The notes beneath the pieces are model-generated. The model saw only the letters and a list, made by a program, of their open reading frames with translations. It did no database searches and was not told the origin of the DNA. Positions 3,754-45,787 of a DNA stretch of 64,000 nt are shown here, piece after piece; positions within the stretch are counted from its first letter, which is position 1, and each line of letters starts with the position of its first letter. Made by a program: the position numbers and the translations under genes. The DNA lies in the IMG/VR virus record IMGVR_UViG_3300021197_001489, positions 248,001 to 312,000 of that record, one strand, 5' to 3'.

Positions 3754-4302
3754 ATGTTTTTCTATGACAATGGTGAAATTTGTGTAACAGCTTTTAGTAG
3801 ATGTGGCCATACCAGTATGTATGAACACTTTGGGCTTCCTGTTTATTCTATTAATGGCAAAATTTCTGACTTTGCAAATTCTAAAACCAAAAAAAAAGTT
3901 TTGGTTGTAAGAAATCCCTACGATAGATTATTGTCGGCTGTCAATAATTCTAAAACACTTAAAGAAAATAATGTGTCATCTGATGATTACACACAATGGA
4001 CTATAGATCATTCAATCCCGCTTTTACAGGATCAAAGACTGCTTAACCTAGACTTTAAAATTATTGACTTTTACAAATTAAACAAGTACATTGGCTTTTC
4101 TAAAGTAACAGTAGTTACTAACTCAGTTAAGCCAGGGGCCTGGCTATGTAGTAAATCCATCTACGACGACTACATGATGCTTTATCATAGTCAAGAAGAA
4201 ATGGAAAGAGAATATCAGGCCTATCGAAGTATCATGATATCACACGACGAGATATCAGTTCCAGAATGGAAATTAATGGTTGACTTTTTGGATAAAAAGT
4301 AG
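3754..4302 (+). CDS. Sulfotransferase-family-like protein
   Basis: RCGHTSM (5'-PSB-like) and VRNPYDRLLSA (3'-PB-like) motifs. Confidence 0.6.
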   Translation: MFFYDNGEICVTAFSRCGHTSMYEHFGLPVYSINGKISDFANSKTKKKVLVVRNPYDRLLSAVNNSKTLKENNVSSDDYTQWTIDHSIPLLQDQRLLNLDFKIIDFYKLNKYIGFSKVTVVTNSVKPGAWLCSKSIYDDYMMLYHSQEEMEREYQAYRSIMISHDEISVPEWKLMVDFLDKK

Positions 4303-4348: not shown

Positions 4349-5740
4349 ATGATCAAATTCAACAAAGATGCGTTCAAAGCCGACGGCAGCGTAGTTGCAG
4401 CAGCAAAGTACAATGGATTACAGGTGGCCAGTGATTGGATCCGCGATCTTGAAGATGACAACAGTAGATTACACAAAGAAGGTGTAATTGAAAAAGCTCT
4501 CATAGCGGCCAGACTAGGTAGTTCTAGTGCTGAATGTTTTCTCTACAATTGTTATCTTGCATACAATCCCTATTTTACCTATAATGTAAAGCAGGTTCCG
4601 GAAACGGAAGGCCTAGAGCATAGAGAAAATCCTTGGGTACAGTTTTGGGGATTGTGTGAAAGTTTGCGCACACGCACACTGACAGGACATAAAGCCCGCG
4701 ACACTATTAAAATTATCAGCGAACGCTTTGACAGTGAGCAGTGGAACATGCTGGCACGTCGTGTGCTTATTAAAGATTTACGCTGTGGCATCACTGCAAA
4801 AACACTTAACAAAATATTGGGCAACAGCGAATGGAAGATTCCTGTATTTGAAGTACAGCTAGCGACAGACAGCAAAGGTCATCCTAAGAAGATGACTGGC
4901 TTGTGCAGGCTTGAGCCCAAGTTGGATGGCGTACGAACTATTGCTGTTGGATATCGCAATGGCACTGTGATGCTGTACAGTCGCAACGGTAAAGAGTTCT
5001 CTAACTTCCCTCATATTGCGGAGCAAGTGAGAGCATTGGTGCAAAAACACAACTTACGCTATGACTTGGTGCTGGATGGCGAAATTGTTGGCGACAGTTT
5101 CCAACAGTTGATGAAACATGCACACAGAAAAGATCATGTAGAAAACACTGCGGATTATCATGTTTTTGACATTATGCGCCTTCAAGAGTTAAAAGAAGGA
5201 CATTGCAATCGCAATCAACACAATCGTTTGCAAGCACTTGAAGCACTAGTTTCAATGAGCGGCTTACCAAACATACATCTAACAGATGGCTTTACTGTTG
5301 ATCTTTCTGATGATAATGGCCATAAAACAATGACAGAGTATGCTGAAAAATGTGTCGCTGAAGGTTATGAAGGCATTATGATTAAACGCCTGGACGCTCC
5401 GTATGAATGTAAACGTAGCACATTCTGGATGAAATGGAAACCAGTTATAACAGTAGACTTGGAGGTAATAGATATTGAAGAAGGCACAGGAAGAAACGAA
5501 GGGCGTCTTGGTGCGTTGGTATGCGAAGGTATTGATGATGGTCGTACTATACGGGTTAATGTTGGAAGCGGTTTGTCTGACAGTGATCGTGATAGTTATT
5601 GGGCTCGGCGCAATGATCTAAAAGGCTACATTGTAGAAATCAAAGCAGATGCTGTTACACAAAATCAAGACGGCACATACAGTTTGCGTTTCCCACGATT
5701 TGAAAGATTCAGAGGCTTTGAACCTGGCGAGAAACTGTAA
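4349..5740 (+). CDS. lig: ATP-dependent DNA ligase
   Basis: Motifs EPKLDG (adenylated Lys), LDGEI, HVFD, EGIMIK, KWK; C-terminal OB fold with VGSG and LRFPRF. Confidence 0.96.
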   Translation: MIKFNKDAFKADGSVVAAAKYNGLQVASDWIRDLEDDNSRLHKEGVIEKALIAARLGSSSAECFLYNCYLAYNPYFTYNVKQVPETEGLEHRENPWVQFWGLCESLRTRTLTGHKARDTIKIISERFDSEQWNMLARRVLIKDLRCGITAKTLNKILGNSEWKIPVFEVQLATDSKGHPKKMTGLCRLEPKLDGVRTIAVGYRNGTVMLYSRNGKEFSNFPHIAEQVRALVQKHNLRYDLVLDGEIVGDSFQQLMKHAHRKDHVENTADYHVFDIMRLQELKEGHCNRNQHNRLQALEALVSMSGLPNIHLTDGFTVDLSDDNGHKTMTEYAEKCVAEGYEGIMIKRLDAPYECKRSTFWMKWKPVITVDLEVIDIEEGTGRNEGRLGALVCEGIDDGRTIRVNVGSGLSDSDRDSYWARRNDLKGYIVEIKADAVTQNQDGTYSLRFPRFERFRGFEPGEKL

Positions 5741-5980: not shown

Positions 5981-8227
5981 ATGTTCTTAGCTTTATTAAT
6001 ATTAATTGTAGCACTTAGCCTTTCAGGCATTGCTGCCTATTATAGTATAATTGGTTTGGCTGCAATCTTTGCGGCAGCAGTCATTCCAATTATAATTATG
6101 GGCGGCATACTGGAGATTGCTAAACTAACAGTGACAGTGTGGTTGCATCAACATTGGAACCGTGCAAAGTTTTTAATGAAAGCATACTTGGTGTCTGCTG
6201 TGGCTGTGCTGATGTTTATCACATCAATGGGAATCTTTGGGTTTCTCAGTAAAAGTCATATCGAACAAACTAGTGCAGGTACAGAACAAATTGTACAAGC
6301 AGAAGTAATTGAAAATAAGATTTTAAGAGCGCAAGCAAAGCAACAGCGTTGGACTGATGAAATCGCAAGACTGCAAGCCGGTGAGACTAGTGGCAGAGTT
6401 GATGCTTTAATTGCACGTGAGCGCGAGCGTATCAAGGATGCAAGAGCAAGTCTGGCACCGCAGATTGATGCAGAAAATGCAAAGGTTCCTGGACTTAGAA
6501 CACAAGCAGAAAAAGAAGTAGCGCAGCAGAACAAACGTTTGTCAGATGCACAGAGTCGCAGTGCTGAGGCTATAAAAGTTGCACAAGCAGAACTTGATAG
6601 ACTGGACGCAGATGTAAAAGCATACACCAGACAAGGGCAAGCAAAAACAGGCGCATTTGGCGGCACAACAGACATGGTTGCCAAAGGCAATGAATTACGC
6701 AAACAACAGCGACGCCAACGTGGTAAGCTACAAGGTGATATTGACAAAGCAAAAAGTGCAGAAGTTAGTGTTGCTAGTGCAGTACAACGTGAAATAACAA
6801 AGATTAACAATCGGCTTGCAGATCAAATAAAAGAAGTAGAAGCTCGTATTGCAGATATACGCAAAACTGTAGAGCCTACCATTGCAAGTGCAAATGAAAA
6901 TATTGCAAAGTATACTACACAAGCAGGCAGTTCAAACAAGGACATTGATGTACGCATTGATGAACTAGAGAATCAAATAGATGCATTACAGCCAACTATA
7001 GATACACTGCGTGAAGATAAGTTTGTGTATGAAAAACAATATAGACAGTTTGAAGCTGAAGTAGGACCGATTAAATACATTGCTGAACTTGTGTACGGTG
7101 CCGACCCTGATCAAAACTTGCTAGAAGAAGCAGTACGTTGGGTTATTATTTTAATTGTTGCAGTTTTTGATCCACTAGCAATCATGATGCTACTTGCTGC
7201 TACTGAAACGTTTGGCTGGCGCCGCAAAGACAAGGAGAGTATTGTTGATAACACGAAAACTGAGAGCGTATTGCCGCCTGCGCCGGTTGAGGAAGCACCG
7301 TCAGGCGACCAGCAAACAGAAGAATCACCAGATGCAGCAACTGACCAATCTGGACCAGAGATTGAAGAAACTGGAGAAGCAGATAGCGCAGATAATCAGA
7401 ACTCTGCGAGGGTAAAAGTACATGTCGAGCATATTGTATTACCTGCTGCAGAAGATACACCCTCTGAATCAATTATAAAAGTTCCAGACGAGCCACTCTT
7501 TCCAGAACACGGAACGCCTGAAGCAAAAGCCTTTAGCGATGATATTGTTGCAGCCGCAATGGCCAAACAGTTTGGTACCAAGGCTGACGAAACAAAGAAG
7601 ATTGAAGAAGAAGTTCAGGATCAAATAATCCTTGAATTTATGCAGCCAGCAGAGGAGCTAGACAATGCCAGCGCGGATTCAGAAGTCACTACAGCAGAGC
7701 AAGAAGAGATCACAGACCTGGGAGAACCCGGACAAACAGAACCCACAGTTGAGGAAGAAACAATTACAGATACTGAGCTTTTTGCTTGGAAAGACGAAGA
7801 TGAAGGCGATCCAGAAAAAAGAGCAAAGCGAATTTGGAAACGACTGAATCCTCAAAGCACACTTAAAGAAGAAGAATACAAATTTTCTCACAAAGTAATT
7901 CCTGAAGTTCCGTGGACTCAGTATATGCGAGCAGACGATTCCGACCTAGACCAGTACACCCGTGCTGACTTTGGAACAAGGTTCCCTACACGTCCGATCA
8001 AAGGTGATACGTTTGTCAGGGTTGATTTTTTGCCAAGTAAACTTTACAAATGGAACGGCAAAAAATGGATTGAAATTGACAAAGAAAACACTGATGCATT
8101 TACCTATAACGAAGAATATATAGCACACCTCATTGAGAAACTTGGTTCTGGTGAATATGACCCTGATCTTTTAAATGATGCAGAACGAGCCCAAATCGAA
8201 CAACAACTTAAAAACCAGGAGCTGTAA
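5981..8227 (+). CDS. Membrane-anchored long coiled-coil protein with acidic C-terminal region
   Basis: Three N-terminal hydrophobic helices, ~270-aa coiled coil, another TM segment ([23 protein letters not shown]), E/D-rich linker, KWNGKKW domain. Confidence 0.7.
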
Positions 8228-9435
8228 TGAGTGATGATCTCAGCAATCAATACGAAAATTGCAATTTTTGTAATAAAAGCAAGAACGACGTCAAAAAGCT
8301 CATTGTTGGGGACAATGTAGCTATTTGTAACGAATGTGTGGATTTATGCGGAGAACTGCTTATTCAGCTAACCAACTCTACAATAAATCCTAAAGAAGAC
8401 AACGACATAAACCCTAGCGAACTCAAGGATTTTCTAGACAAATACGTGGTAGGCCAAGAAAATGCAAAAATTACACTTTCAGTGGCCGTAGCAAATCATT
8501 ACAAAAGAATCAACAACACCAATCCAGACATTGAACTTGACAAAGCTAACGTGTTATTGTTAGGACCAACTGGCTGTGGTAAAACACTGTTGGCAAAAAC
8601 TGTAGCACGTTATCTTGATGTGCCATTCACTGTTGCTGATGCGACATCAATCACGGAAGCAGGATATGTTGGTGACGATGTTGAAACATTGATTTCACGA
8701 TTGTTAGGCAGCGCCAATGGTGATGTTGAACGCTGTGAAAAAGGAATTATCTTTCTCGATGAGGTAGATAAAATTGCTCGCAAAAGTGAAAATACTTCAA
8801 TTACTCGTGATGTAAGTGGAGAAGGTGTACAACAAGCATTGCTTAAAATGGTTGAAGGTACTGTGTGTCGTGTACCGGTTGCTGGTGCAAATCGCAAGAA
8901 TCCACAATCAGAAATGATTGAAGTTGATACCAAAAATATATTGTTTATTGCAGGCGGTGCATTTGTCGGTATCAATGATGTTATCAAACGCAGAGCAGAA
9001 GGATCAGGCATTGGATTTGGTGTTGATGTAAAAACAAATAAAGCTGCTGATCTCAAAGATCTTGAACCTGATGATCTAGTCAAGTATGGCATGATTCCTG
9101 AATTTGTAGGACGCTTCCCAACATGGGTAGGCTTAACTGAATTAACAGTAGACCAGTTGATTTTTGTGTTAACTGAGATTCGCAATAGTTTAGTAGCACA
9201 GTACACCTATTTGTTTAAGACAGACGGTGTTGCACTGACGTTTAGTGATGCGGCACTGCAAGAAATTGCAAGTACTGCAAGCAAACGGAAAACTGGTGCA
9301 AGAAGTTTACAAGCAGAGCTTGAGCGTATACTGATGCCGCATATGTTTAGCCTAAAAGAATATGCAAAAAGCAAGATAACTGAAGTCAAAATCACCCCCG
9401 AACTAGTAAAAACTCCACAAAAATTAGCTGCCTAA
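8227..9435 (+). CDS. clpX: ATP-dependent Clp protease ATP-binding subunit ClpX
   Basis: C4 zinc domain (CNFC...CNEC), Walker [13 protein letters not shown] pore loop, [18 protein letters not shown] loop. Confidence 0.97.
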
Positions 9436-9446
9436 ATAAAGAAAAA

Positions 9447-9492
9447 GGTTGACCTTTCTGTTTAATCTGTTATAATGTATATAACAGTTAGG
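9447..9492 (+). promoter_or_regulatory. sigma70-type early promoter (member of a repeated family)
   Basis: ggTTGACC-17 bp-TATAAT followed by gtatataacagttag. Confidence 0.75.
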
Positions 9493-9493
9493 A

Positions 9494-9706
9494 ATGAGTC
9501 ATATGATGCCAGTACATTTTATAGGTGTAGCACAAGATCAGTTTGTTAGCGCAGTTCGCGTATTTGGCGAGCCTGATTTTGTACACAAATGGCATGATTA
9601 TCGCAGTCATGGAGACATAGACTGGGACAGTGATACAGTTGTTCTAGGCGACAAAGGTCGCACAACCCCTTGCAAATGGAGCTGGCAAGATCATGAACTA
9701 TACTAA
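9494..9706 (+). CDS. Hypothetical protein
   Basis: 70-aa ORF directly behind the early promoter. Confidence 0.55.
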   Translation: MSHMMPVHFIGVAQDQFVSAVRVFGEPDFVHKWHDYRSHGDIDWDSDTVVLGDKGRTTPCKWSWQDHELY

Positions 9707-12020
9707 AATTACACTTGGACTAATGGCATGTACAGCACTGAGTGCTTGTGGCGGCGGCTCAGGTGGCGGTGGGCCAGTAGTTGGTGGCCCACCTAGTAGT
9801 CAATATTATACAACACCTGTAGCGCAAGGCACAGTTGATCCGTTGGCAGGTGCTGCTGAAAATGCAGCATTTGTTGGCGACACATTTATCACTGATTTAG
9901 ATGGTGATGGAGCTACTGACGACATTGTAATGGCAGGCAGACAAACACAGCCTGTATCAGCAGCAAATATTCGTGATAGCAGACTGAGCGTACACTCGTT
10001 TGAGAATGGACAATTGGTTGATAAAACTGCACAGTGGTTTTCAGGAACTGACAATGTAATAATGGGCACAGAGCCTGACGTGCAATTTAGAGATTTCTTT
10101 AAGACAGGCAAACAGGATATGTTTGTATCGCACAGCACTGATATGCAACACTACGGTCCAGCTACATTTTTCCGCAACAATGGCAGCAACTTTACAAAAG
10201 TATCAATCCCTACAGTAGGTATTTGGTCACATGGCAGTGATGTTGGCGATCTCAACAACGACAGCTATGATGACATTATCATGCTGGACTATGGACCAAA
10301 CTCAACTATTGCACTGAACAATACTGTAGATGGATTTACAACATATGTTGATCCACGTGGTCGTAACGGCCATTTTAAAAGTGGAGGATCAGGTGTTGCC
10401 ATTGGTAATTTTATGAATGATGGCGGCAACAATGAAATTATTGTAAGTGACGGTGCGTGTCCATTGCAGTATCTCAATGTTGTTGGATGCGACAATGCAA
10501 ATAGAACCAAAATGTTCAGTGTGGATTTTACTGGCGGTACGTTAACATACACATTTATTAAAGATCTACCATCAGGCGCAAATGCAGCAAACGTCGATCA
10601 CCATGTGAGAGTTGTTAATCATGATTACAACGAAGATGGCAATGCTGATGTGATTGTGTTCTCTCGGACAAGTAGCTCTTGGAGTACAGAACTTAGCGAG
10701 ATACAGTTTTTGCAAAATGACGGTAGCGGTAACTTCACTGACACTACAGCAGATACACTGATTGGATATAAAACTGATACAGCTAGTACTTACAAGCCAA
10801 AATTCTTTGATATCAATGGCGATGGAAAAACTGATATACTGGTAAGTGGTACAGAGTTCGAAGGTAATGGTGGCGGATATAACAGTCATCAGTTTTTGCT
10901 AAAAACAGCCGATAACAAATATATTGCTGCTCATCAAAATATTCTAAAAAACTTTATGAACGATGTTGAAAGCATTGCAACGGGCAACGTCAGTGGCTCA
11001 AGTGTTAACATCTTTCAAGGTGATGATGGTAACCAGTATCTTGTAACATGGGCTAGCACGTCTAGTGTGAGTAGTGACACAAAACTTACACTGTTTATGA
11101 GTCGTCTTGATGATAGTGCAACCACTATCAGTGCTGGAACTGCGGTAACTATGTTGCAAAATGCTTGGCCGTACCTAAGTGATGCACAAGCAACACAGGC
11201 ACTGCTCGATACTAGCACAAGTTTTGCTGGTGGCAATATCATTGATATGAACCGTGCGTATCAGCCAATTGGTAACTTGGCAATGGGAGGCTTGGACTTA
11301 ACTGGCTCAATCACAGGCTTTGATATTGGCAACATTACAGGAATGGCAACTGACAGCCTTGGACGCGGTTACGGTATAGATCTTGCCCAGGCAAACATTG
11401 TGAACACAGGCACTGCTATGTACAACAGTATTGACACAGTGCGCAACGCCTACACTGACGGCGAAGTACACTTTGGTGCAGACAGCGACACACAGCAATG
11501 GACAGTGGGCAACAGCTATTATAAAAATGGTAACGTAGATGTTAGCATGCACATGACACAGTTGAACAGCAACCCTTGGATTGGTTTTAGCGGTGTATGG
11601 GGCGATGTTAAAAACGCCAGCATCATTGACAATGTTGTTACCTACAAGCAGGACAATGTCACACTAAAAGGCAGTGTAATGCATGTGAGTACAAACTTTA
11701 CGCCAGGACTGATCACAGATGTATCCAAGCAAACAGGTGCATGGGCTGAAGCCAGTTACAGTGACGGCGGGTTCCGTGCAGATGTTGGTGTACATCCTGT
11801 TATGTTGTCAGGGTCGGTAACGGCAAACGTTCCAACCAGCATTGACAATACAGGGACAACACACTATACAAACTACAAGTTTGCTTTGCCTAGTAACATT
11901 AATGGTTACATTCGCAGCCAATACAGCACTCCACTTAAACTAGGCAAGTTGAATGTAGCAGCCGCAGTTAGTCAAACAGGGCAGCAAACTACTAGTGTTG
12001 AATATTTCTTTAAATGGTAA
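9693..12020 (+). CDS. Lipoprotein with FG-GAP/VCBS repeats and predicted C-terminal outer-membrane beta-barrel (autotransporter-like)
   Basis: Lipobox LSA-C; repeats DLDGDG, DLNNDS, DYNEDG, DINGDG; alternating beta-strand C-terminus ending YFFKW. Confidence 0.7.
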   Translation: MNYTKITLGLMACTALSACGGGSGGGGPVVGGPPSSQYYTTPVAQGTVDPLAGAAENAAFVGDTFITDLDGDGATDDIVMAGRQTQPVSAANIRDSRLSVHSFENGQLVDKTAQWFSGTDNVIMGTEPDVQFRDFFKTGKQDMFVSHSTDMQHYGPATFFRNNGSNFTKVSIPTVGIWSHGSDVGDLNNDSYDDIIMLDYGPNSTIALNNTVDGFTTYVDPRGRNGHFKSGGSGVAIGNFMNDGGNNEIIVSDGACPLQYLNVVGCDNANRTKMFSVDFTGGTLTYTFIKDLPSGANAANVDHHVRVVNHDYNEDGNADVIVFSRTSSSWSTELSEIQFLQNDGSGNFTDTTADTLIGYKTDTASTYKPKFFDINGDGKTDILVSGTEFEGNGGGYNSHQFLLKTADNKYIAAHQNILKNFMNDVESIATGNVSGSSVNIFQGDDGNQYLVTWASTSSVSSDTKLTLFMSRLDDSATTISAGTAVTMLQNAWPYLSDAQATQALLDTSTSFAGGNIIDMNRAYQPIGNLAMGGLDLTGSITGFDIGNITGMATDSLGRGYGIDLAQANIVNTGTAMYNSIDTVRNAYTDGEVHFGADSDTQQWTVGNSYYKNGNVDVSMHMTQLNSNPWIGFSGVWGDVKNASIIDNVVTYKQDNVTLKGSVMHVSTNFTPGLITDVSKQTGAWAEASYSDGGFRADVGVHPVMLSGSVTANVPTSIDNTGTTHYTNYKFALPSNINGYIRSQYSTPLKLGKLNVAAAVSQTGQQTTSVEYFFKW

Positions 12021-12028
12021 AAAGAAAG

Positions 12029-12059
12029 TTGACAAAGGGGTAGTTTTCCTGTATAAATA
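12029..12059 (+). promoter_or_regulatory. Overlapping sigma70 promoter and T4-type late promoter for hsp20
   Basis: TTGACA (12029)-17 bp-TATAAA; the same bases form TATAAATA (12052-12059). Confidence 0.75.
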
Positions 12060-12061
12060 AT

Positions 12062-12122
12062 ATTGTAAGTTGCTTAACAGGACTTACAATTTAAATCTTG
12101 CTTTTAAAGGAGAAACAAAATG
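12062..12122 (+). promoter_or_regulatory. ROSE-like RNA thermometer in the hsp20 5'UTR
   Basis: 9-bp hairpin ATTGTAAGT/ACTTACAAT, then TCTTGCT-TTTAA-AGGAGA pairing the SD with a bulged G. Confidence 0.7.
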
Positions 12123-12593
12123 ACAAGACTAACCTCACTAGACCTCACACCATTTTATCGTAACGCAGTTGGATTTGATTCACTGTTTGATCGTATGACT
12201 GCCAACATTGATATGGCTGCATCAAGTGGTGGGCAAAACTATCCACCCTATGATATCATTCGTACCGGTGACGAAACCTACAGAATTCAAATTGCTGTTG
12301 CAGGTTTCCAACTAGCTGATATCAAGATCGAACTAGAAAATGGCACATTGAATATTACAGGGCACCAATACAAGCCAGACGTTTCAAAAGAAGACGGCGG
12401 GCAGCTTGCTAACAATGAAGAGTATCTGCACAGAGGAATTTCAAACAGAAACTTCCATCGATCATTTAATTTAGCAGACTACGTCGAAGTTAAAGGTGCG
12501 ACCATTAAGGATGGGATACTCAAAATTGAACTTGAAAGAGTTATTCCTGAGGTAATGAAACCTAAAACCATTGAAATTAAGCACGAATCCTAA
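12120..12593 (+). CDS. ibpA: Small heat shock protein Hsp20 (IbpA-like)
   Basis: GFD.LF, NYPPYDII, AVAGF, YLHRGIS.R.F.RSF.LA, DGILKIEL. Confidence 0.96.
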   Translation: MTRLTSLDLTPFYRNAVGFDSLFDRMTANIDMAASSGGQNYPPYDIIRTGDETYRIQIAVAGFQLADIKIELENGTLNITGHQYKPDVSKEDGGQLANNEEYLHRGISNRNFHRSFNLADYVEVKGATIKDGILKIELERVIPEVMKPKTIEIKHES

Positions 12594-12655
12594 AACTTCA
12601 GATAAGTACAAGTATGCAGAGGGTAATCCTCTGCGTACAGTACAGAGAGAAAACA

Positions 12656-12961
12656 ATGAGCGAAGCAGAAACAAAAACTAAAGTTAGCATCAATGAGCAA
12701 CTCAAAGAGCCTAGTTTGTTTAAACTTATCTACGTCAACGACAACGAAACTGCTATGGAGTTTGTGGTTGAATCATTGGTAGAGATATTTGATTATGCAC
12801 CTACAACCGCTGAAAATTTGACTATTCGTGTACACGAAGAAGGTTCAGCTACAGTAGCAGTGTTGCCATTTGAGATGGCCGAACAAAAAGGTATTGAAGT
12901 TACAGTAAGTGCTAGAGGCGCAGGCTACCCACTTCAGGTCAAACTAGAACCAGAAGTTTAG
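12656..12961 (+). CDS. clpS: ATP-dependent Clp protease adaptor ClpS
   Basis: EP..FKLIYVND..T.MEFVV..L, VHEEG.A.VA, E.AEQK, YPLQVKLEP. Start moved to ATG 12656. Confidence 0.9.
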   Translation: MSEAETKTKVSINEQLKEPSLFKLIYVNDNETAMEFVVESLVEIFDYAPTTAENLTIRVHEEGSATVAVLPFEMAEQKGIEVTVSARGAGYPLQVKLEPEV

Positions 12962-13773
12962 TCGATTACAATACGTTTTGGATAATAAACATGCTTGCAC
13001 CAATCGGTGCCAGCTCTTCCCCTGGCATTGTTTGTATATCGTATGCCATTTATAATTGTATCAACATCACTGTGATAATGTCCAAACACCCAAGTATGTA
13101 CTTTGTGTTCGTGATCTTCTTCTAAACACCTGGTAAGAAAACTATTACCAGTACAATTTAAACTGTGCGAACCTTCCAATGCTACATCATGTCTAACTAA
13201 ATTTACATCAGGAACAAAATGAGATACCAGAACGATATGCTTAATATCAACATGAGTCTGTAACTTTTCGACTGTTTTACACAGAAATCCAGCATCACTC
13301 ATGGCCATTGCTTCGATGTTTTGTCCAGCAAACATATCAATGCCATAGCGTTCTTCAAACCAACGTTTGCTATCAGCATAAGAAAGGTCATTATCAAAGT
13401 CGAAGTTGGTCCAACCGTTGGTACCAACAAATGCCACACCATCGATTATCAGTGTGTTATCTTGCAACCAAATAACATCCGGAATGTTTTCTATTTCTTT
13501 GTGTAGTGTTTTATAACTGTCAGCAAGGTCATGCATTGTCCAACGGTGTTCGTCATTGCCGTCAACATACATTACAACTTTGTAATGATTGGTAAGCTCT
13601 TCCAGCACTGGGCATAAGTCTGCACGTTCTCTGCTGATATCACCAGCAACAACAGCATACAAACTGGTGGCTTTGCCTTCCCAGCTAAACGGTTCATCCC
13701 ATGTATCAACATGTAGATCAGAAATTAAATCGAAGGTTATGTTCATATCATAACTACTTACACAAGGAGACAA
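12958..13773 (-). CDS. Calcineurin-like metallophosphoesterase
   Basis: Motifs SDLH, AGD, GNDEH, VSH, FGHYH. Confidence 0.9.
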   Translation of the reverse strand: MSPCVSSYDMNITFDLISDLHVDTWDEPFSWEGKATSLYAVVAGDISRERADLCPVLEELTNHYKVVMYVDGNDEHRWTMHDLADSYKTLHKEIENIPDVIWLQDNTLIIDGVAFVGTNGWTNFDFDNDLSYADSKRWFEERYGIDMFAGQNIEAMAMSDAGFLCKTVEKLQTHVDIKHIVLVSHFVPDVNLVRHDVALEGSHSLNCTGNSFLTRCLEEDHEHKVHTWVFGHYHSDVDTIINGIRYTNNARGRAGTDWCKHVYYPKRIVID

Positions 13774-14408: not shown

Positions 14409-14491
14409 TTGTTTTGGGGCTATAGAGATAAGTAAAGCGAGAATAAAAACTGCTCTTTACTTCTCAATTGTTAACAATAAGGAAAAAATTA

Positions 14492-15331
14492 ATGAAGAAA
14501 ATTTTAATGGCTGCCACTGTGGCGGCTCTAATGTCTACCTCTGCACTTGCAGAAATTACTATTGGGGGTGACATGGAATGGTCATTCCAAGACTCAAACG
14601 GTACATCAAGTAGTGCAGTTGATGGCGATATCAACATCAAGCCAAGTATCACTACTGAAGCAGGATTAACAATTGGTGCTGATTTCAATATCAATCAAGA
14701 CGGCAACGATGATGGAGGCAACAGCCTAACTATCTCGGGCGGCTTTGGTAAAGTTGATCTTGGTGACGTTAACTCTGCCACTGATGCAATTGACGACGTA
14801 ACAGATTGGGGCAAGGTGCTTACTAACGGTTCGCCAAGTACAGACCATGCAGCAATTCTTTCACTGTCACCATTTGCCGGTGCAAAGATCCACGTTTCGG
14901 GTGCTGCTGACAGCAACTATGGCACAACAGCAGGCGCAGGTTATGCCTATGCCGGTACATATGATATTGGTTCAATTGCAACAGTCGGTTATGGCAAGTT
15001 GGAAAACAACAACGACTCAAGTGAAACAGTCATGAACGTCAAAGGTTCAATGGGTCCAATTGGCCTTGGCTACGAGAAGCACACTGCTACAACAGCAGCT
15101 AAAGTAGACACTGATACAACATCAATGTCAGCTGCGTTCACAATGGGTGCAACAACAGTTGCACTTGAGTTGATGAATACAGAAAGTGCTGGTACAAAAT
15201 CAAGTGACGAAACTACATATGGTGTTCACCACACAGTTGCACCTGGTTTAGTTGCTTTTGCTGAGTACACTGACGATGATAAAACAGCGTCCGAAGAAAC
15301 AACAGCAATTGGTATTGCAATGACATTCTAA
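14492..15331 (+). CDS. Outer-membrane porin (alphaproteobacterial general-porin-like)
   Basis: Signal peptide MKKILMAATVAALMSTSALA; N-terminus EITIGG; amphipathic beta strands; terminal Phe (GIAMTF). Confidence 0.88.
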   Translation: MKKILMAATVAALMSTSALAEITIGGDMEWSFQDSNGTSSSAVDGDINIKPSITTEAGLTIGADFNINQDGNDDGGNSLTISGGFGKVDLGDVNSATDAIDDVTDWGKVLTNGSPSTDHAAILSLSPFAGAKIHVSGAADSNYGTTAGAGYAYAGTYDIGSIATVGYGKLENNNDSSETVMNVKGSMGPIGLGYEKHTATTAAKVDTDTTSMSAAFTMGATTVALELMNTESAGTKSSDETTYGVHHTVAPGLVAFAEYTDDDKTASEETTAIGIAMTF

Positions 15332-21042: not shown

Positions 21043-22074
21043 CTCTTGGGTTATTGAATCAAAAAATTCATCACTAAAAAACAGCGTTTTGTTTTTGCTG
21101 GCTATAGTTTTACAGCTATTCCAAATTGATTCCTGTTGATTATCAGGTAAGTTATTGATACGATCCATCTCTTTTATGACCATGAGCATGCGCTTGTCGC
21201 AGTCTGATTCTGTATCATAACTTTCGTCAATAAAGGGTGAGAATGTTTCGAATCCGTAACTGCGCAAATATTTCAGTGTTCCAGCACCATTCAGTATCAT
21301 AAAAGGATGCCCGCATGCAATTGGGCGTAGTGTTTTTTCTGTAAGGTGGATGCGACCATCGTATACAGTTTCTAACACAATGCTGCAATTTGTTTTTGCA
21401 AAGTCTTCGCAGTTATATTCAGCACTGCTATTGCTGTTAACAACGGCGTCAGGATCAATACTGCCCAGTTGCTTTCTGTCAACAAACCTAAGCAGTTTTA
21501 AAAAATGTTGTCGGTATTGTCTTGTGCCAGTTGTGCCTCTGGCATACACTAACCAATTAGCCTCTTTGTCTTCTTGCGGTAGTTCAAGACGTTGGTCATA
21601 CTGAGCATATCTATACCAGTCTCGAGCAATTGCTGCATGACTCCACCAATAAGCACATGCAAATAGTCCACTGTCTTCATAGCGTTCTACTTGAGGGCTA
21701 GCCAGTTCACTGTGTAATAATATCCATTTTTCTGTGAAGTTTTGTGGGTGCTGCCATCTTAGATTTAGGTTCTCATAGTTAGATTTTTTAATATCATCGA
21801 TTTGTGTTGGAATAAAGTTACCACTAGCTACAAGTGCGTTGAGGATCTTTTGATCATCACTGTACATGTCAAAATCCAATGGCTCTTGATCGTGACAAAT
21901 TAGCACAGGAAAAGCAGCGTATTTTTTACGATATATATCTTCGTTCATTCGATCTACATTGCTTACTAGATTGGCAATATCTTTTTGTCCCCAGGGATAG
22001 AAGTATTTGATTAAAAATTTATTTTCTACCACCTGGGCGACAAAATTGTATAAATTACTAGTAGGAACAGACAT
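21016..22074 (-). CDS. Hypothetical protein, glycosyltransferase-like C-terminus
   Basis: SIVLET...LTEKTLRPI..GHPF..L...GTLKYLRSYGF resembles the GT10/fucosyltransferase-like donor-binding region. Start moved to ATG 22074. Confidence 0.5.
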   Translation of the reverse strand: MSVPTSNLYNFVAQVVENKFLIKYFYPWGQKDIANLVSNVDRMNEDIYRKKYAAFPVLICHDQEPLDFDMYSDDQKILNALVASGNFIPTQIDDIKKSNYENLNLRWQHPQNFTEKWILLHSELASPQVERYEDSGLFACAYWWSHAAIARDWYRYAQYDQRLELPQEDKEANWLVYARGTTGTRQYRQHFLKLLRFVDRKQLGSIDPDAVVNSNSSAEYNCEDFAKTNCSIVLETVYDGRIHLTEKTLRPIACGHPFMILNGAGTLKYLRSYGFETFSPFIDESYDTESDCDKRMLMVIKEMDRINNLPDNQQESIWNSCKTIASKNKTLFFSDEFFDSITQELRDNVLSI

Positions 22075-22090
22075 CTTAGAAAGGTACCTT

Positions 22091-23326
22091 ATGAGAATTG
22101 GATTTATTGGGCTTGGCAAGCTCGGACTTGATTGCGCCGAAGTAATGGCAGAAAAGTATACAGTACATGGCTACGATATTTACCCGCGTACTTCGGACAG
22201 TGTAAAAGTTTGTAGCACTCCCAAAAAGATGATTGACAACAGTGATTGGATTTTTATTGCTGTTCAAACGCCACACACAGAAGGTTATGATGGTAGTGTT
22301 CCTAGCTCGCACATGGAACCCAAAGACTTTGGACATGATGCTGTTAAAGATGCTATTAACATGGTAAACGAACTGGCTATCGAACCAAAAAAGATTGTGC
22401 TTATTTCAACAGTGCTTCCTGGAACTACACGACGTGAGTTTTATCCCTTGCTAAACAGTGAGCATCAATTTTTATACAATCCATACTTGATTGCAATGGG
22501 CAGTGTAAAGTGGGACTTTGCTAACCCTGAAATGGTTATGATAGGTACCGAAACAGGTGATCCTACAGAGATGGAAGATCTAATCAATCTGTATCGCCCA
22601 CTGATGAAAAACAATCCACGTTATGTTACAGGTACCTGGGACGAATGCGAAAGTATAAAGATATTTTACAACACATTTATCAGTGCTAAAGTAGGGCTTG
22701 TAAACATGATACAAGACTTTGCACTAAAGATAGGCAACATAAACGTTGACGTTGTTACAGACGCTCTAGCACAGAGTACAATGCGTATTATGGGTCCGAA
22801 GTACATGACAGCAGGCATGGGAGACTCAGGCGCATGCCATCCACGAGATAACATTGCACTGCGTTGGCTTGCAAAAGAATACGATATCGGTTACGATATG
22901 TTTGATACTATTATGGGTGCTAGAGAAGTACAAGCAAAGAATCTAGCAGACTTTTTGGTAGAACACGCCGACGGCAAGCCTATTGTGATACACGGGAAAG
23001 CATACAAACCTGATGTGCCTTTTTGTATCGGAAGTTATAGCACACTGATTGGTTTCTACATTGAAGAGCAAGGATTGCCGGTAAAGTATGTAGATCCAAT
23101 TGCAGACAATCCAAAAGACGTAGTTGATAGCATTGACGAAGCATCAATGATATTGTATGCACACAATAGATATATCACATACGGTTATACTGGACAGTAT
23201 ACCAAGGATGATACTTTCTACTGTGACATTCCACCAGGTTCTGTTGTTGTTGATCCATGGAGAAACCTGCCTAAACACAGTAACAGTTACGAAGTAATAC
23301 ATTATGGCAACACCAGACCACAATAA
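22091..23326 (+). CDS. ugd: UDP-glucose/GDP-mannose dehydrogenase family
   Basis: GFIGLGKLG, IAVQTP, STVLPGT, YNP, E..KIFYN, GDSGACHPRD, GKAYKP. Confidence 0.92.
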   Translation: MRIGFIGLGKLGLDCAEVMAEKYTVHGYDIYPRTSDSVKVCSTPKKMIDNSDWIFIAVQTPHTEGYDGSVPSSHMEPKDFGHDAVKDAINMVNELAIEPKKIVLISTVLPGTTRREFYPLLNSEHQFLYNPYLIAMGSVKWDFANPEMVMIGTETGDPTEMEDLINLYRPLMKNNPRYVTGTWDECESIKIFYNTFISAKVGLVNMIQDFALKIGNINVDVVTDALAQSTMRIMGPKYMTAGMGDSGACHPRDNIALRWLAKEYDIGYDMFDTIMGAREVQAKNLADFLVEHADGKPIVIHGKAYKPDVPFCIGSYSTLIGFYIEEQGLPVKYVDPIADNPKDVVDSIDEASMILYAHNRYITYGYTGQYTKDDTFYCDIPPGSVVVDPWRNLPKHSNSYEVIHYGNTRPQ

Positions 23327-26554: not shown

Positions 26555-27577
26555 ATGGCTGCTCGCGTAGGCTTTTGCTGCAAGTATCTGCATCCAGATC
26601 AGACACAAAAGAAAAAAGTCCTAATGGAGATCCAGCAACAGCGTACAGAAAAATGTACCACTGTTGCGTGGCTTAAACGGCAGACTCGTGAAGTTGCTGA
26701 ACAGCGTTTGTATGACATCATGCAACACAACATGCAAAGCGCGGCCAACTTGGTTGAGTATGTAGGACGCCTTGAGCCAGGATTGCGAATGGTGCGACTG
26801 GGCAGCAATCAATTGCCCATGTACACACAGCCAGACTTCAGTTACTTTTGGCAACAACCTGATATCAAAGTTGAATTGGCAAAAGGTTACGCACAAGTAG
26901 GCAAACTTGCACGACAGTGGGATGTGCGCCTAAGTTTTCACCCTGGACAGTTTTGCGTATTAGCCAGTGACAGTGAAGATATCGTAAATAGAAGCATAGA
27001 GGAGTTTGAATATCATGTTGACATGGTCAGATGGATGGGCTTCGGCCGTAAATTCCAAGACTTCAAGTGTAATGTCCACATCAGCGGTCGCCAGGGTCCA
27101 GCCGGTATCCAACGAGTCCTCCCAAGACTATCTCCAGAAGCGCGAAACTGCATTACTATTGAGAATGACGAGATGTCGCACGGTCTCGACGCATCGCTTG
27201 AGCTCAGCAAAGACGTCGCCCTCGTTCTTGATATACACCACCACTGGGTCCGTACCGGTGAATACATCGAGGCCACCGACGATAGAGTTCTTCGCGTAAT
27301 TGATAGCTGGCGCGGTATACGCCCAGCATTGCATTACTCAGTATCACGTGAAGACATACTGGTTGATCACGATCCTAATGTGCGTCCAGATATGGAAAGT
27401 TTACTCGCAGCAGGCTTCAAGAAACAAAAACTTAGAGCGCACAGTGACTTCTACTGGAATCATGCAGTCAACGAATGGGCTGCAACATTTGCCAAAGATT
27501 TTGACATACAATGTGAGAGCAAGTGCAAGAATCTTGCCAGTCATGCATTCCACAATAACTATATTAAAGGAGACTAA
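26555..27577 (+). CDS. uvsE: UV damage endonuclease UvsE/UvdE
   Basis: GFCCK, VRLGS, RLSFHPGQF, NVHISG, IEND, VLDIHHHW, HYS, HSD, E.KCK. Confidence 0.95.
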   Translation: MAARVGFCCKYLHPDQTQKKKVLMEIQQQRTEKCTTVAWLKRQTREVAEQRLYDIMQHNMQSAANLVEYVGRLEPGLRMVRLGSNQLPMYTQPDFSYFWQQPDIKVELAKGYAQVGKLARQWDVRLSFHPGQFCVLASDSEDIVNRSIEEFEYHVDMVRWMGFGRKFQDFKCNVHISGRQGPAGIQRVLPRLSPEARNCITIENDEMSHGLDASLELSKDVALVLDIHHHWVRTGEYIEATDDRVLRVIDSWRGIRPALHYSVSREDILVDHDPNVRPDMESLLAAGFKKQKLRAHSDFYWNHAVNEWAATFAKDFDIQCESKCKNLASHAFHNNYIKGD

Positions 27578-38649: not shown

Positions 38650-39707
38650 TATTTTACCAACTCTGGCTTGAAGATTGATTTAAGACCAAATGCTTCTGTG
38701 TTGAACTTTACCAGTGTTTGCAGTGCATCAGCAGTTACAAACTTCATCAGTGTGTTTACTTGTGCATTGCCTGCATCACCTAGCATCCACTCATAGTTGC
38801 CAACTTTCTTTTGAATCTTCTTGATTGACTCAGGATTGGTTGACACCTTTTCAAGTGCTGCCACAAGTTTTGCTCTATTAGGATTGCCTTTGTTTACCCA
38901 CAATGCTTTTTGTAATCCATCTCGGAAACTTTTTACCAGCTTGTATGCATCTGCTAGATCGCCTTTTGGGTCTGCTTTGTACAGGGCAGAAAATTGTGTT
39001 TCCATTTGAATGCCTGGATAGTTTGGATCATCTGCGTGGGTACCGTCTGGCTGTAGAATGCCATGATGGAACCATAAACGTGCTTCACCTTTGTCAATTA
39101 CTGGCTGTACATGCTTTTTGAATGAAGCAGGATTTTCACGAGTGCCATTGAGTTCGCCACGCTTGAATGCAAGACGTCTTTCGTTGCCCTTCATTCCTTT
39201 AATCCAGTTTACCTTTTCGTTGAAGCAACCAACGTATGCTTCTGTGCTAGGTAAATTACCACACTTTAGCAGTGTCATTGCGATACCTTCAGGAACTTTA
39301 CCGCCGCCTCCTGAGAAACTTGTTCTGTCAGCATTGGGATTATGATCGCCATGTACTGCTGTAATAATGTTAAGGTTCATTAGTCCAACTGAATCATAGT
39401 CAGCATAGTTGTAATCCACTGCTTCTTGTAAGAAACTTACACCGTTGCCGCCGTTGGATACCATAATAGTTTTGTCATCAAAACGCAGTTCATTGTGGAA
39501 CTTGTTAAAGCCTGGAATATCCCTTGCACCACGGATGTGCTTGAGAATAATTTTTTCATCCAAGTATTTTTCCATCTCAGTGGCCACAATCTGTGCCCAC
39601 TGACTTGTACCGCCGCCTGGCTTCTGTGGTACAATCATTGTGTAATCAGCAACTGCTGATGTTGTAAAACCTAGCATCAGTGCTAGTGATAATAAAAGTT
39701 TACGCAT
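38649..39707 (-). CDS. tctC: Tripartite tricarboxylate transporter substrate-binding protein (TctC/Bug-like)
   Basis: Signal peptide; MIVPQKPGGGTS; next to tctA. Confidence 0.8.
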   Translation of the reverse strand: MRKLLLSLALMLGFTTSAVADYTMIVPQKPGGGTSQWAQIVATEMEKYLDEKIILKHIRGARDIPGFNKFHNELRFDDKTIMVSNGGNGVSFLQEAVDYNYADYDSVGLMNLNIITAVHGDHNPNADRTSFSGGGGKVPEGIAMTLLKCGNLPSTEAYVGCFNEKVNWIKGMKGNERRLAFKRGELNGTRENPASFKKHVQPVIDKGEARLWFHHGILQPDGTHADDPNYPGIQMETQFSALYKADPKGDLADAYKLVKSFRDGLQKALWVNKGNPNRAKLVAALEKVSTNPESIKKIQKKVGNYEWMLGDAGNAQVNTLMKFVTADALQTLVKFNTEAFGLKSIFKPELVK

Positions 39708-41139
39708 AATCTATTCTTCCTTTTCTCATAATGCTGTATACAAATATTCCAATAATACACACAATTAGTGACATGAATATTGGACGTGTGATTAATGTTT
39801 CCACAGTGTAAAGTCCTGTGATCTGAAATGTTAATCCTTCAACTTTTTCTGCCAGTATGTAACCGATTAACATAGCAGGTCTGCTAAACTTGTAGTGTCG
39901 CATTGTAAATCCTATTACAGAAAATACTGCTAACATTGCAAGGTCTTCCCAACCGCCTGTGTACTGCATTGAAGTAAAAATAATCAATCCTAGTAGCACA
40001 GGAAAATAATATTTGTATGGAACTGCGGCCAGTTTACTAATTGGCTTGATTAAAACCATACAAATCAGTGCAACTACAACTGTGGCACCTAAAAAGCCAA
40101 ATGTCATACTTGCAAATAATTCTGTGTCTTCTGCAATATCTGGCGTGCCCAGTTCGATGCCCAAGTACATAAACAGGCTCATCAATATAGCTGCAAACTT
40201 TGCACCTGGTATGCCAAATATAACTGTGGTAATCATTGATGTTGCCTTTTGTGCATTGTTAGCACCCTCAGGTCCTATCACACCCTTGATGTTGCCATTG
40301 CCAAACTTTTCTTTGGGATTACTGGCAACTGCTTGTCCATACGCCATCCAGTCTGCCATTTGCCCACCTAGTCCAGGCAACAAGCCAATGAACGCACCTA
40401 TAAAGCCACCGCGCAAAGCAAGCCATCTGTTCTCCCAACTTGCTTTCATGCCTGCCCATAGCTCACCATCGCGTATTTCACTGTCAGCAGTGCTGTGCTT
40501 TAAAAACAGCCCTCGTGTTAGTTCAGGAACAGCAAACAGTCCTGCGGCAACTGCCATTATCTGTATACCATCTTCTAAGTAGAACCAATATTGTGCGCCG
40601 AATCTGGCTGCATTATTATCTGGGTTGACACCTACCATGCCTACAAAGATTCCAAAAGCAATAGCAAGGATGGTGCGGAACCAAAACTGGTTGGTTAAAA
40701 ATCCCACAGTGACAAATGCCATTAAAACAAAAGCCCACAGTTCAGGCACACCCAGTATATAGATTAAATTGGTATACCATGGCAACAATAAAAATACCAA
40801 ACACCCCCAAAGCAAACCGTTTACAGTTGATGTTGTTACTGCGGCACTGATAGCATAGCCTGCTCTGCCACGTTGGGCTAGTGGAAAGCCATCAACCATG
40901 GTAGCGGCTGCACTGTTAGCACCGGGTATGCCTAGCAGTATTGCAGTGAAACTGTCACCTGTTGTGCTTGCAGCAACTACTGCCATAAGGAATATTACTC
41001 CCATATATGGCTCGTGTGCAAAGTAGCTAATAAATCCAAACAGTGCAACCAAACCTGTTGTTGCCCCTGCACTGGGAATAATGCCTATAATTAGGCCATA
41101 AAATACTCCGCCGAGCAGATATGTAATCATCTCGATCAT
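39700..41139 (-). CDS. tctA: Tripartite tricarboxylate transporter permease TctA
   Basis: ILLGIPG...AATMVDGFPLA..G, IGLLPGLG, GPEGANNA, FGIPG; about 12 TM helices. Confidence 0.92.
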   Translation of the reverse strand: MIEMITYLLGGVFYGLIIGIIPSAGATTGLVALFGFISYFAHEPYMGVIFLMAVVAASTTGDSFTAILLGIPGANSAAATMVDGFPLAQRGRAGYAISAAVTTSTVNGLLWGCLVFLLLPWYTNLIYILGVPELWAFVLMAFVTVGFLTNQFWFRTILAIAFGIFVGMVGVNPDNNAARFGAQYWFYLEDGIQIMAVAAGLFAVPELTRGLFLKHSTADSEIRDGELWAGMKASWENRWLALRGGFIGAFIGLLPGLGGQMADWMAYGQAVASNPKEKFGNGNIKGVIGPEGANNAQKATSMITTVIFGIPGAKFAAILMSLFMYLGIELGTPDIAEDTELFASMTFGFLGATVVVALICMVLIKPISKLAAVPYKYYFPVLLGLIIFTSMQYTGGWEDLAMLAVFSVIGFTMRHYKFSRPAMLIGYILAEKVEGLTFQITGLYTVETLITRPIFMSLIVCIIGIFVYSIMRKGRIDYA

Positions 41140-45725: not shown

Positions 45726-45746
45726 TCTACTTTAGACTGCATTTGG

Positions 45747-45775
45747 GAAAGCCACCTTCGGGTGGCTTTCTTTTT
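45747..45775 (+). terminator. Rho-independent terminator with UUCG tetraloop
   Basis: GAAAGCCACC-TTCG-GGTGGCTTTC-TTTTT. Confidence 0.92.
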
Positions 45776-45787
45776 ATAAGTAGTAGT

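Follow-up and report, generated by a model that had tools for sequence, protein, structure and literature searches.

A predicted autotransporter-like lipoprotein of a giant phage, with an FG-GAP propeller in the place of a subtilisin-type protease and a vestigial protease tail

Autotransporters are seen as devices of virulence and adhesion in bacteria. Phages also place proteins with export signals in the outer membrane of their hosts, namely T5 Llp, the Cor lipoproteins of phi80 and N15, and the lambda proteins Bor (a lipoprotein) and Lom (an 8-stranded barrel); Llp is the product of an early gene and masks the receptor. To our knowledge, phage proteins in the host outer membrane have been known only as small lipoproteins or 8-stranded barrels. 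Here we describe a 775-residue protein encoded, with an ATG start, by an open reading frame (ORF) at positions 9693-12020 (+ strand) of a 64,000-nucleotide stretch (hereafter the window) of IMG/VR virus record IMGVR_UViG_3300021197_001489. From N- to C-terminus, it consists of a lipobox with a flexible tether, an FG-GAP β-propeller, the vestigial end of a peptidase S8 (subtilase) domain, a Gly-rich linker and a predicted outer-membrane barrel. Its closest described counterparts are the lipidated subtilisin autotransporters NalP and SphB1, in which lipidation is thought to hold the passenger at the cell surface (PMC9289746).

The window covers bases 248,001-312,000 of the 316-kb record, whose completeness is rated at 91% by IMG/VR. 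The source genome is that of a T4-like giant phage, as indicated by a gene for a T4-type major capsid protein near 143.6 kb (Pfam Gp23, E 4.7e-98) and one for the large terminase near 191.6 kb. Our literature searches turned up no account of giant-phage proteins of the FG-GAP, subtilisin or autotransporter-like kind, and a comparative review of 224 jumbo phages does not mention such proteins. What is new here is a phage-borne, autotransporter-like lipoprotein, predicted to lie in the outer membrane, whose passenger has been replaced and which retains the relic of a protease tail.

The subtilase vestige and the protease-bearing relatives

An exhaustive profile search with residues 470-775 retrieved 190 protein clusters at E≤1e-3, family clusters being defined at 50% identity. 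Twenty of these hits, picked for unusual length or match position, were run through Pfam, which identified the complete Peptidase_S8 domain in 19 of them (E 1e-14 to 1e-51). In these S8 relatives, the last 40-50 residues of the protease domain overlap the start of the profile match: the domain spans residues 517-817 in P0184, with the match at 776-1096, and residues 308-612 in P0174, with the match at 564-909. An earlier note on this DNA had likened residues 484-527 to the C-terminal helices of S8 subtilase autotransporters, had remarked that no catalytic G-T-S motif precedes them, and had called for a search for homologues with an intact S8 domain. The search found such homologues, and the segment is homologous to the end of the S8 domain by way of these relatives that retain the whole protease.

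In the alignment, the A-G-T-A...W-P-Y-L-S helix of the family lies on the V-A-G-A...W-P-Y-M-K helix that follows G-T-S-M-A-A-P in the S8 relatives, and the correspondence continues through the next helix, the G-x-G-L-L-D hairpin, the Gly-rich linker and the barrel. In order to exclude any score driven by the barrel, a hidden Markov model (HMM) was built for residues 478-527 from FG-type sequences only, i.e. those with an FG-GAP propeller. This model matches all 19 S8 relatives (19/19) at the end of the S8 domain, with 10-27 bits, against a maximum of 5.6 bits among 399 shuffled or reversed control sequences. Where the motif was located, in 16 relatives, the catalytic Ser precedes the start of the aligned vestige by 8-10 residues. 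The vestige comprises the second half of the catalytic-Ser helix, the last helix and the final hairpin, and holds no catalytic residues. The G-T-S motif is indeed absent at the expected spot, there is no Asp-His-Ser triad, and neither the whole protein nor its parts match Pfam S8 at E≤10. Since only the subtilase tail behind the Ser is kept, the protein cannot be a protease. Residues W492, L504, P525 and G527 of the vestige are invariant in an alignment of 42 sequences, to which all statements on invariance below also refer. This indicates that the vestige is under constraint, and we read it as part of a conserved anchoring unit.

A word search restricted to residues 480-775 gave 148 proteins; among the 120 matches listed, all lengths fit a build of FG-GAP propeller plus C-terminal domain, and nearly all the proteins have FG-GAP Pfam domains. 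A tree of the shared C-terminal region was then computed by a quick IQ-TREE run from 128 non-redundant sequences, of which 17 are S8-type, with intact Peptidase_S8, and 111 are FG-type. One branch, with a support of 99 in the Shimodaira-Hasegawa-like approximate likelihood ratio test (SH-aLRT), splits the two groups. The earlier proposal that a protease passenger was replaced by a propeller therefore stands, given the intact-S8 relatives that share the C-terminal unit, but not as an event in this phage: with 111 of the 128 sequences FG-type and a single separating branch, the swap is, on this tree, ancestral to a large family. A hidden FG-GAP propeller, which would represent an intermediate architecture, was sought in the long N-termini of S8-type relatives and none was found. 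The same lipobox and poly-Gly tether are present in several S8-type proteins (the lipidated relatives P0168, P0184, P0187, P0256, P0258 and P0265), and hence the exchanged part is the internal passenger. We are highly confident of this architecture and of its evolutionary origin.

The two forms also occupy the same slot in related phage contigs, with the S8-type P0271 (L053 7001-9022) in one and the FG-type P0106/P0110 (L006 8001-10415, L009 8001-10445) in others. The order of genes for both is epimerase, GTP cyclohydrolase I, the gene in question, HIT and PTPS. The flanking genes of these contigs are 39-80% identical, and the shared C-terminal domain only 27%. The slot between GTP cyclohydrolase I and HIT/PTPS sits within a cluster of 7-deazaguanine and sugar-nucleotide genes. 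Among the S8-type proteins, P0184 and P0271 are found on phage-like contigs, and P0193 on a clearly bacterial contig, where it adjoins RecR, YbaB and DnaX.

Lipobox, propeller and C-terminal barrel

The N-terminus starts with a charged region (MNYTK), followed by a hydrophobic core and the lipobox L16-S-A-C19, an arrangement that agrees with the lipoprotein pattern [LVI][ASTVI][GAS]C within approximately the first 30 residues. Cys19 is invariant and would be the lipid-bearing residue. A Gly/Pro-rich tether follows, so that the lipobox and linker described in the earlier note are both confirmed. Poly-Gly after the lipobox is a family-wide feature that extends to some S8-type relatives, and 96 of 105 full-length FG-type relatives have the lipobox together with the Gly run. 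Minus-strand ORFs within 9693-12020 encode at most 110 amino acids and are unsupported.

The passenger exceeds the curated cut-offs of two Pfam profiles, namely FG-GAP_3 (PF13517; E 3.6e-15, 56.7 bits vs. a cut-off of 26.9, in 4 stretches) and FG-GAP (PF01839; E 1e-6, 28.8 bits vs. 22.1). A full-length AlphaFold (AF2) model was obtained from the 42-sequence alignment, with a mean predicted local distance difference test score (pLDDT) of 78.9. In this model, about 28 strands at residues 43-472 form seven blades, with pLDDT mostly 75-94; profiles and fold together are those of an FG-GAP/VCBS propeller. The Foldseek matches of the propeller are CRTAC1, integrin alpha heads and the fungal lectins PVL and AAL2 (E 4e-7 to 1e-6). 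Four canonical DxDxDG-type loops, predicted to bind Ca2+, start at residues 68, 186, 311 and 373; two or three further loops, at about residues 134 and 239, are degenerate. The 'about six' Ca-binding repeats counted earlier were thus a generous estimate, although the fold is that of a seven-bladed propeller. Loop residues D186, D194, D311, D373, N375, D377 and D381 are invariant. The sole closely spaced Cys pair of the mature protein, C256 and C266, lies within the propeller; a single pair of this kind fits the known limits on autotransporter passengers.

For the C-terminal part, residues 470-775 were folded separately with 43 homologues. The resulting model has helices at 481-491 and 497-506, a poorly defined stretch, and about 12 long antiparallel strands between residues 586 and 773; in the model of the whole protein, pLDDT values of the barrel are mostly 74-89. 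Foldseek comparison of the C-terminal model with the PDB returned outer-membrane barrels only, as weak rows (E≥8e-3, TM-score 0.24-0.35), and an exhaustive VIA-align search gave clear barrel matches. The best of these is KdgM (Z 12.8; 141/171 residues, root-mean-square deviation 3.5 Å), followed by CymA (12.5), NanC (11.6), AIDA-I (11.0), NalP and EspP (both 10.8), FapF (10.7), and BrkA, Hbp and EstA (9.4-10.2). All of the best 50 rows are β-barrel membrane proteins, nearly all from the bacterial outer membrane and a few of them organellar. The C-terminus, described earlier as rich in β-strands with an aromatic end, does model as a transmembrane β-barrel, and its terminal residues are Y-F-F-K-W. 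The last residue is aromatic in 67 of 111 FG-type relatives and in 16 of 17 S8-type ones, and 109 of the 111 FG-type relatives have an aromatic residue among their last 4 positions.

In the model, the protein thus has the architecture of an autotransporter, with an N-terminal passenger followed by a C-terminal 12-stranded outer-membrane barrel. By sequence, the barrel is not a member of the Pfam Autotransporter family (PF03797), and no S8-type relative matches that profile at E≤1e-3. Pfam, NCBIfam and PDB-sequence scans of residues 480-775, made with the single sequence as well as with a profile, gave nothing usable; the similarity to the KdgM porins is structural only, there being no Pfam match for this region. 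No match to PHROGs was obtained for the whole protein. A feature search of the ESM Atlas returned generic outer-membrane barrel families only, with scores of at most 0.87, and is regarded as a lead only.

The Gly-rich linker ahead of the barrel has the invariant residues G538, G542 and D554. The linker has a pLDDT of 35-40 in the separate model of the C-terminal part and of about 50-87 in that of the whole protein; it may be a segment that traverses or plugs the barrel. Some relatives have a longer insert just before strand 1. Taken together, the lipobox, the modelled 12-stranded C-terminal barrel and the terminal aromatic residue support the view that the protein bears the marks of an outer-membrane protein, and we consider an outer-membrane location likely.

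Distribution, expression and gene neighbourhood

A scan of IMG/VR identified 40 loci of the family, several of them on contigs of 228-344 kb. All loci that include the N-terminal part of the gene are FG-type, and ten are syntenic with the window, in the order clpX, gene, hsp20 and clpS. A close relative, P0080, is found on 24 contigs, TARA marine assemblies among them, and the nearest ESM Atlas clusters are labelled Viruses/Uroviricota. Among 50,697 deposited phage genomes, there was no match by megablast with the region or by tblastn with the protein, and the family has no cultured representative among them.

A pattern scan of 185,579 species genomes gave one locus, L010 (NSIQ01000026.1, 280,609 bp), in an 'Alcaligenaceae' metagenome-assembled genome (MAG) from Lake Baikal. 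Judged by its size and its FG-type gene, this contig may be a giant phage that was binned with the MAG. Two low-GC MAGs labelled 'Alphaproteobacteria bacterium' have FG-type genes amid housekeeping genes (ValRS and IlvD; RecQ, LepA, LeuA and PurK). The bacterial copy P0042, the only MAG copy in the tree, is nested within a marine phage clade with a support of 100. The GC content of the MAG copies is 0.36-0.37, with flanks at 0.29-0.30, while the phage gene has 0.43 and the window 0.41. Since P0042 is nested among phage sequences and the GC content of the genes lies above that of their flanks and nearer to that of the phage, transfer from phage to bacterium is the simplest reading of these sequences. 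The MAG copies also give hints as to the host group. In both copies (L002 ~9940-12286; L008 ~9900-12247), there is no in-frame ATG ahead of the lipobox; the signal peptide is encoded 5′ of the called start, and a start codon of the ATT type would be needed. In L002, a resolvase gene adjoins the FG-type gene.

A sigma70-type promoter-like site with 11 of 12 consensus positions lies upstream of the gene, as had been claimed in the earlier note, although at 9449-9476 and not at 9447. In 9 of 9 syntenic relatives examined, TTGAC(A/T), a 16-nt spacer and a TG-extended TATA(C/G)T are likewise found shortly 5′ of the FG gene. On the + strand of the window there are 8 sites with at least 11 of 12 consensus positions (9449, 12029, 45365, 47671, 48917, 58951, 60085 and 63390), compared with approximately 1.2 expected, and on the - strand there is one. 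The eight look like a set of host-polymerase promoters of the early class. The sites at 9449 and 12029 bracket a 70-aa ORF and the lipoprotein gene, and the latter site marks the 3′ end of this two-gene unit. Sigma70-type promoters are the early class in T4-like phages. No T4 late-type motif (TATAAATA) was seen in the upstream sequence inspected, and early expression of the lipoprotein gene is a reasonable inference from these sites.

The features of the lipoprotein gene and of its surroundings are listed in Table 1. The genes around it are non-structural, and 66-114 kb separate it from the Gp23 and terminase genes. The 70-aa ORF has no Pfam or PHROG match; five relatives (L011-L013, L015 and L020) have a counterpart of 46% identity at the same place, between clpX and their FG gene. 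Because this ORF overlaps the start of the lipoprotein gene, the pair is probably co-transcribed and translationally coupled, and the small product could be a partner or chaperone of the lipoprotein. With the porin gene besides the lipoprotein gene, the phage carries at least two predicted outer-membrane proteins. The porin gene lies 2.4 kb 3′ of the lipoprotein gene, and syntenic marine relatives encode a porin as well (e.g. L003 12864-13826). Scans for Rfam families and for tRNAs, over both the region and the window, were negative.

Table 1. Features of the lipoprotein gene and its neighbours (window coordinates; aa, residues of the lipoprotein unless part of another protein's size)
Feature	Position	Strand	Basis or remark
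ATP-dependent DNA ligase	4349-5740		upstream of lipoprotein gene
748-aa membrane and coiled-coil protein	5981-8227		upstream; weak PHROG match 'virion structural protein', E 1.4e-5
ClpX	8227-9435	+	upstream
Sigma70-type promoter-like site	9449-9476	+	TTGACC, 16-nt spacer, TG-extended TATAAT; 11/12 match; between clpX and 70-aa ORF
70-aa ORF, unknown function	9494-9706	+	14-nt overlap with start of lipoprotein gene
Type II signal peptide (predicted), aa 1-19	9693-9749	+	lipobox L-S-A-C
Gly/Pro-rich flexible tether, aa 20-36	9750-9800	+	pLDDT <50
Seven-bladed FG-GAP (integrin-like) β-propeller, aa 38-472	9804-11108	+	Pfam, AF2, Foldseek
Vestige of C-terminal end of S8 domain, aa 478-527	11124-11273	+	homology, 50-residue HMM
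Conserved Gly-rich linker, aa 528-585	11274-11447	+	common to S8-type relatives
C-terminal 12-stranded β-barrel (modelled), ~190 aa, aa 586-775	11448-12020 (including stop codon)	+	AF2, VIA-align, Foldseek
Next sigma70-type promoter-like site	12029-12057	+	TTGACA, 17-nt spacer, TATAAA; ahead of hsp20
Hsp20	12120-12593	+	downstream
ClpS	12614-12961	+	downstream
Metallophosphoesterase	12958-13773	opposite	downstream
Gram-negative porin	14468-15331	+	Pfam Porin_4, E 6.7e-22

Elsewhere in the window, a full-length TctA (the large subunit of a tripartite tricarboxylate transporter, E 2.7e-91) is encoded in a minus-strand block at 39700-41139 (-), and the adjoining ORFs, which have no Pfam match, could be its TctB/TctC partners. 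A 1288-aa protein encoded at 58587-62453 (+) combines a class 3 lipase domain (E 3e-16) with Ig-like domains of the He_PIG type, and could be a virion-associated or secreted envelope-degrading enzyme. Auxiliary genes encode a B12-binding radical SAM protein (45743-47674, +), the UV endonuclease UvdE (26555-27577, +), a UDP-glucose/GDP-mannose dehydrogenase (22007-23326, +) and a weakly sulfotransferase-like product (3754-4302, +).

Proposed role and comparison with known systems

On balance, we favour as the best explanation that the gene encodes an envelope protein made by the phage inside a Gram-negative host, and not a part of the virion, with receptor masking as its role. It would be transcribed by host RNA polymerase from the sigma70-type promoter. 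The precursor would be exported by Sec, lipidated at Cys19 by Lgt and cleaved by signal peptidase II (LspA), after which Lol would sort the lipoprotein to the outer membrane and BAM would insert the C-terminal 12-stranded barrel. If NalP and SphB1 are a guide, the N-terminal passenger would next reach the cell surface, where lipid and barrel would tether it; for this step of surface display, we consider the chances evenly divided.

As homology shows, the ancestor of the family had an S8 protease as its passenger, the core of which was swapped, on the branch that includes this gene, for a putatively Ca-binding, 7-bladed FG-GAP propeller, a binding module. Of the S8 domain, only the last ~50 residues were retained, together with the linker and the barrel, as part of what would be a conserved unit for membrane anchoring and translocation. 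The propeller would bind a component of the infected-cell surface that the protease form would cleave. Masking or alteration of phage receptors in this way would lead to superinfection exclusion and would spare the progeny adsorption to debris. A role at the receptor is proposed because a protease and a binding module interchange at one phage locus, because the promoter is of the early type, and because the gene accompanies porin and sugar-nucleotide genes. Receptor masking is the likeliest of the roles considered, but it is a tentative proposal and, taken by itself, less probable than not.

Several observations weigh against this explanation. As the cargo of an autotransporter, a folded propeller of 430 aa is unusual. 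Residues 480-775 and 560-775 do not match Pfam Autotransporter PF03797 at E≤10, and six frames of the whole phage genome do not match it at E≤1. Ahead of strand 1, the model has only a 4-residue helix and no long pore-spanning one, and residues 568-585 are of low confidence. The predicted barrel strands are rather polar, and the freshwater-type relatives have a non-aromatic end (...FWID). The best structural matches are stand-alone small porins (KdgM and NanC) and not autotransporters, with a Z difference of less than 2. Finally, it is the superposition statistics that carry both the closure of the modelled barrel and the path of its linker.

Some of these points lead to the main rival reading, which is that the propeller is periplasmic. 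The lipid would then sit in the inner leaflet of the outer membrane, to which Lol by default delivers lipoproteins, and the barrel would be an anchor or a small KdgM-like channel, with the propeller or protease acting on peptidoglycan, periplasmic proteins or an incoming ejection apparatus. That the best structural matches are 12-stranded porins of the same size (KdgM, Z 12.8; NanC, Z 11.6), together with the lack of a predicted pore helix and of a PF03797 match, is in keeping with this reading. However, the order of domains is that of type Va autotransporters, i.e. signal peptide, passenger and C-terminal 12-stranded barrel; in the sister clade, lipobox, S8 domain and barrel occur together as they do in NalP and SphB1, both of which are active at the cell surface; and the conserved 58-aa Gly-rich linker, common to both forms, directly precedes strand 1. 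We therefore judge a periplasmic propeller to be unlikely.

A little less probable still is that the protein is a surface adhesin or lectin, by which infected cells would adhere to one another, to particles or to hosts not yet infected, so that sinking, grazing or proximity to hosts would be altered. The propeller does resemble integrin alpha, CRTAC1 and the GlcNAc-binding fungal lectins PVL and AAL2, the gene lies amid phage nucleotide-sugar and envelope genes both here and in relatives, and lipidated autotransporter adhesins are known (PMC9289746). Nevertheless, the presence of a protease in the same slot of related phages suits the removal or masking of a target better than adhesion.

We regard it as very improbable that the gene is useless to the phage, whether as a bacterial outer-membrane lipoprotein gene acquired by chance or as a bacterial stretch mis-assembled into a viral contig. 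Such an origin would account for the copies on true bacterial contigs of the two alphaproteobacterial MAGs (with ValRS, LepA, LeuA and PurK) and for the S8-type copy that adjoins RecR and DnaX. It does not agree with the place between clpX and hsp20-clpS that is kept in the ten IMG/VR loci and in the 24 P0080 contigs, with the occurrence of the gene in other giant-phage lineages, or with a bacterial copy that is nested in a phage clade and a GC content in the MAGs that departs from that of the flanks towards the phage value (0.41-0.43).

A VCBS/FG-GAP receptor-binding or decoration protein of the particle is hardly credible: FG-GAP/VCBS repeats do occur in adhesive proteins, and the 748-aa protein encoded upstream has a weak match to a virion structural protein, but the conserved lipobox, the membrane barrel and the terminal aromatic residue are signals for export and outer-membrane insertion, the gene is remote from the capsid and terminase genes and lies amid non-structural ones, its promoter is of the sigma70 type with no TATAAATA motif seen upstream, and the protein has no PHROG match. 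A spanin role is ruled out by size and architecture.

The S8 tail, the Gly-rich linker and the ~190-aa 12-stranded barrel could together be an undescribed, minimal, autotransporter-like translocator that occurs mainly in giant phages and serves them as an exchangeable platform for the display of either a protease or a propeller on infected cells. Such a phage-borne, type V-like module for the destruction or masking of receptors, occasionally returned to bacteria, is conceivable, although we would not call it probable. Many uncultured giant phages carry genes of this kind and probably alter the surface of infected cells with them, which suggests that the placing of large, modular proteins on the host surface is routine among them. 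The family offers a clean natural case of passenger replacement on a conserved translocator, molecular scar included, and the compact barrel can be tested as a display scaffold. It is also of use for studying how giant phages of marine and fresh waters cope with superinfection and with debris that bears receptors, and the nested copies in low-GC alphaproteobacterial MAGs make it a marker for linkage to hosts.

Compared with Peptidase S8, residues 478-527 are homologous to the last ~40 positions of the sister-clade S8 domain and about 10 residues beyond it, whereas the triad and the entire α/β core are absent. Like the integrin alpha head, CRTAC1, PVL and AAL2, the propeller has Pfam scores above cut-offs, DxDxDG loops and a matching fold; the identity is only 13-15%, and those propellers are not fused to a membrane barrel. 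The 12-stranded oligosaccharide porins KdgM and NanC have the same strand number and size and give the best structural matches, at 7-9% sequence identity and without a Pfam match, but they stand alone, with no lipid anchor or N-terminal domain. The phage proteins Llp, Cor, Bor and Lom are small (~60-200 aa) and single-domain, have no homology to the lipoprotein described here, and none of them unites a lipid anchor with both a large binding domain and a barrel.

The resemblance is closest to the lipidated subtilisin autotransporters NalP (Neisseria), SphB1 (Bordetella) and AasP, since the S8-type sister clade likewise has a lipobox, an S8 passenger, a 12-stranded barrel and an aromatic end, and the barrel model superposes on the translocators of NalP (Z 10.8, 180 residues) and AIDA-I (Z 11.0). 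Unlike in those proteins, the barrel here is of ~190 aa and not ~270, has no PF03797 match, and is preceded by neither a β-helix stalk nor a predicted long pore helix. Moreover, the protein described here is encoded by a phage, and an FG-GAP propeller has replaced the protease.

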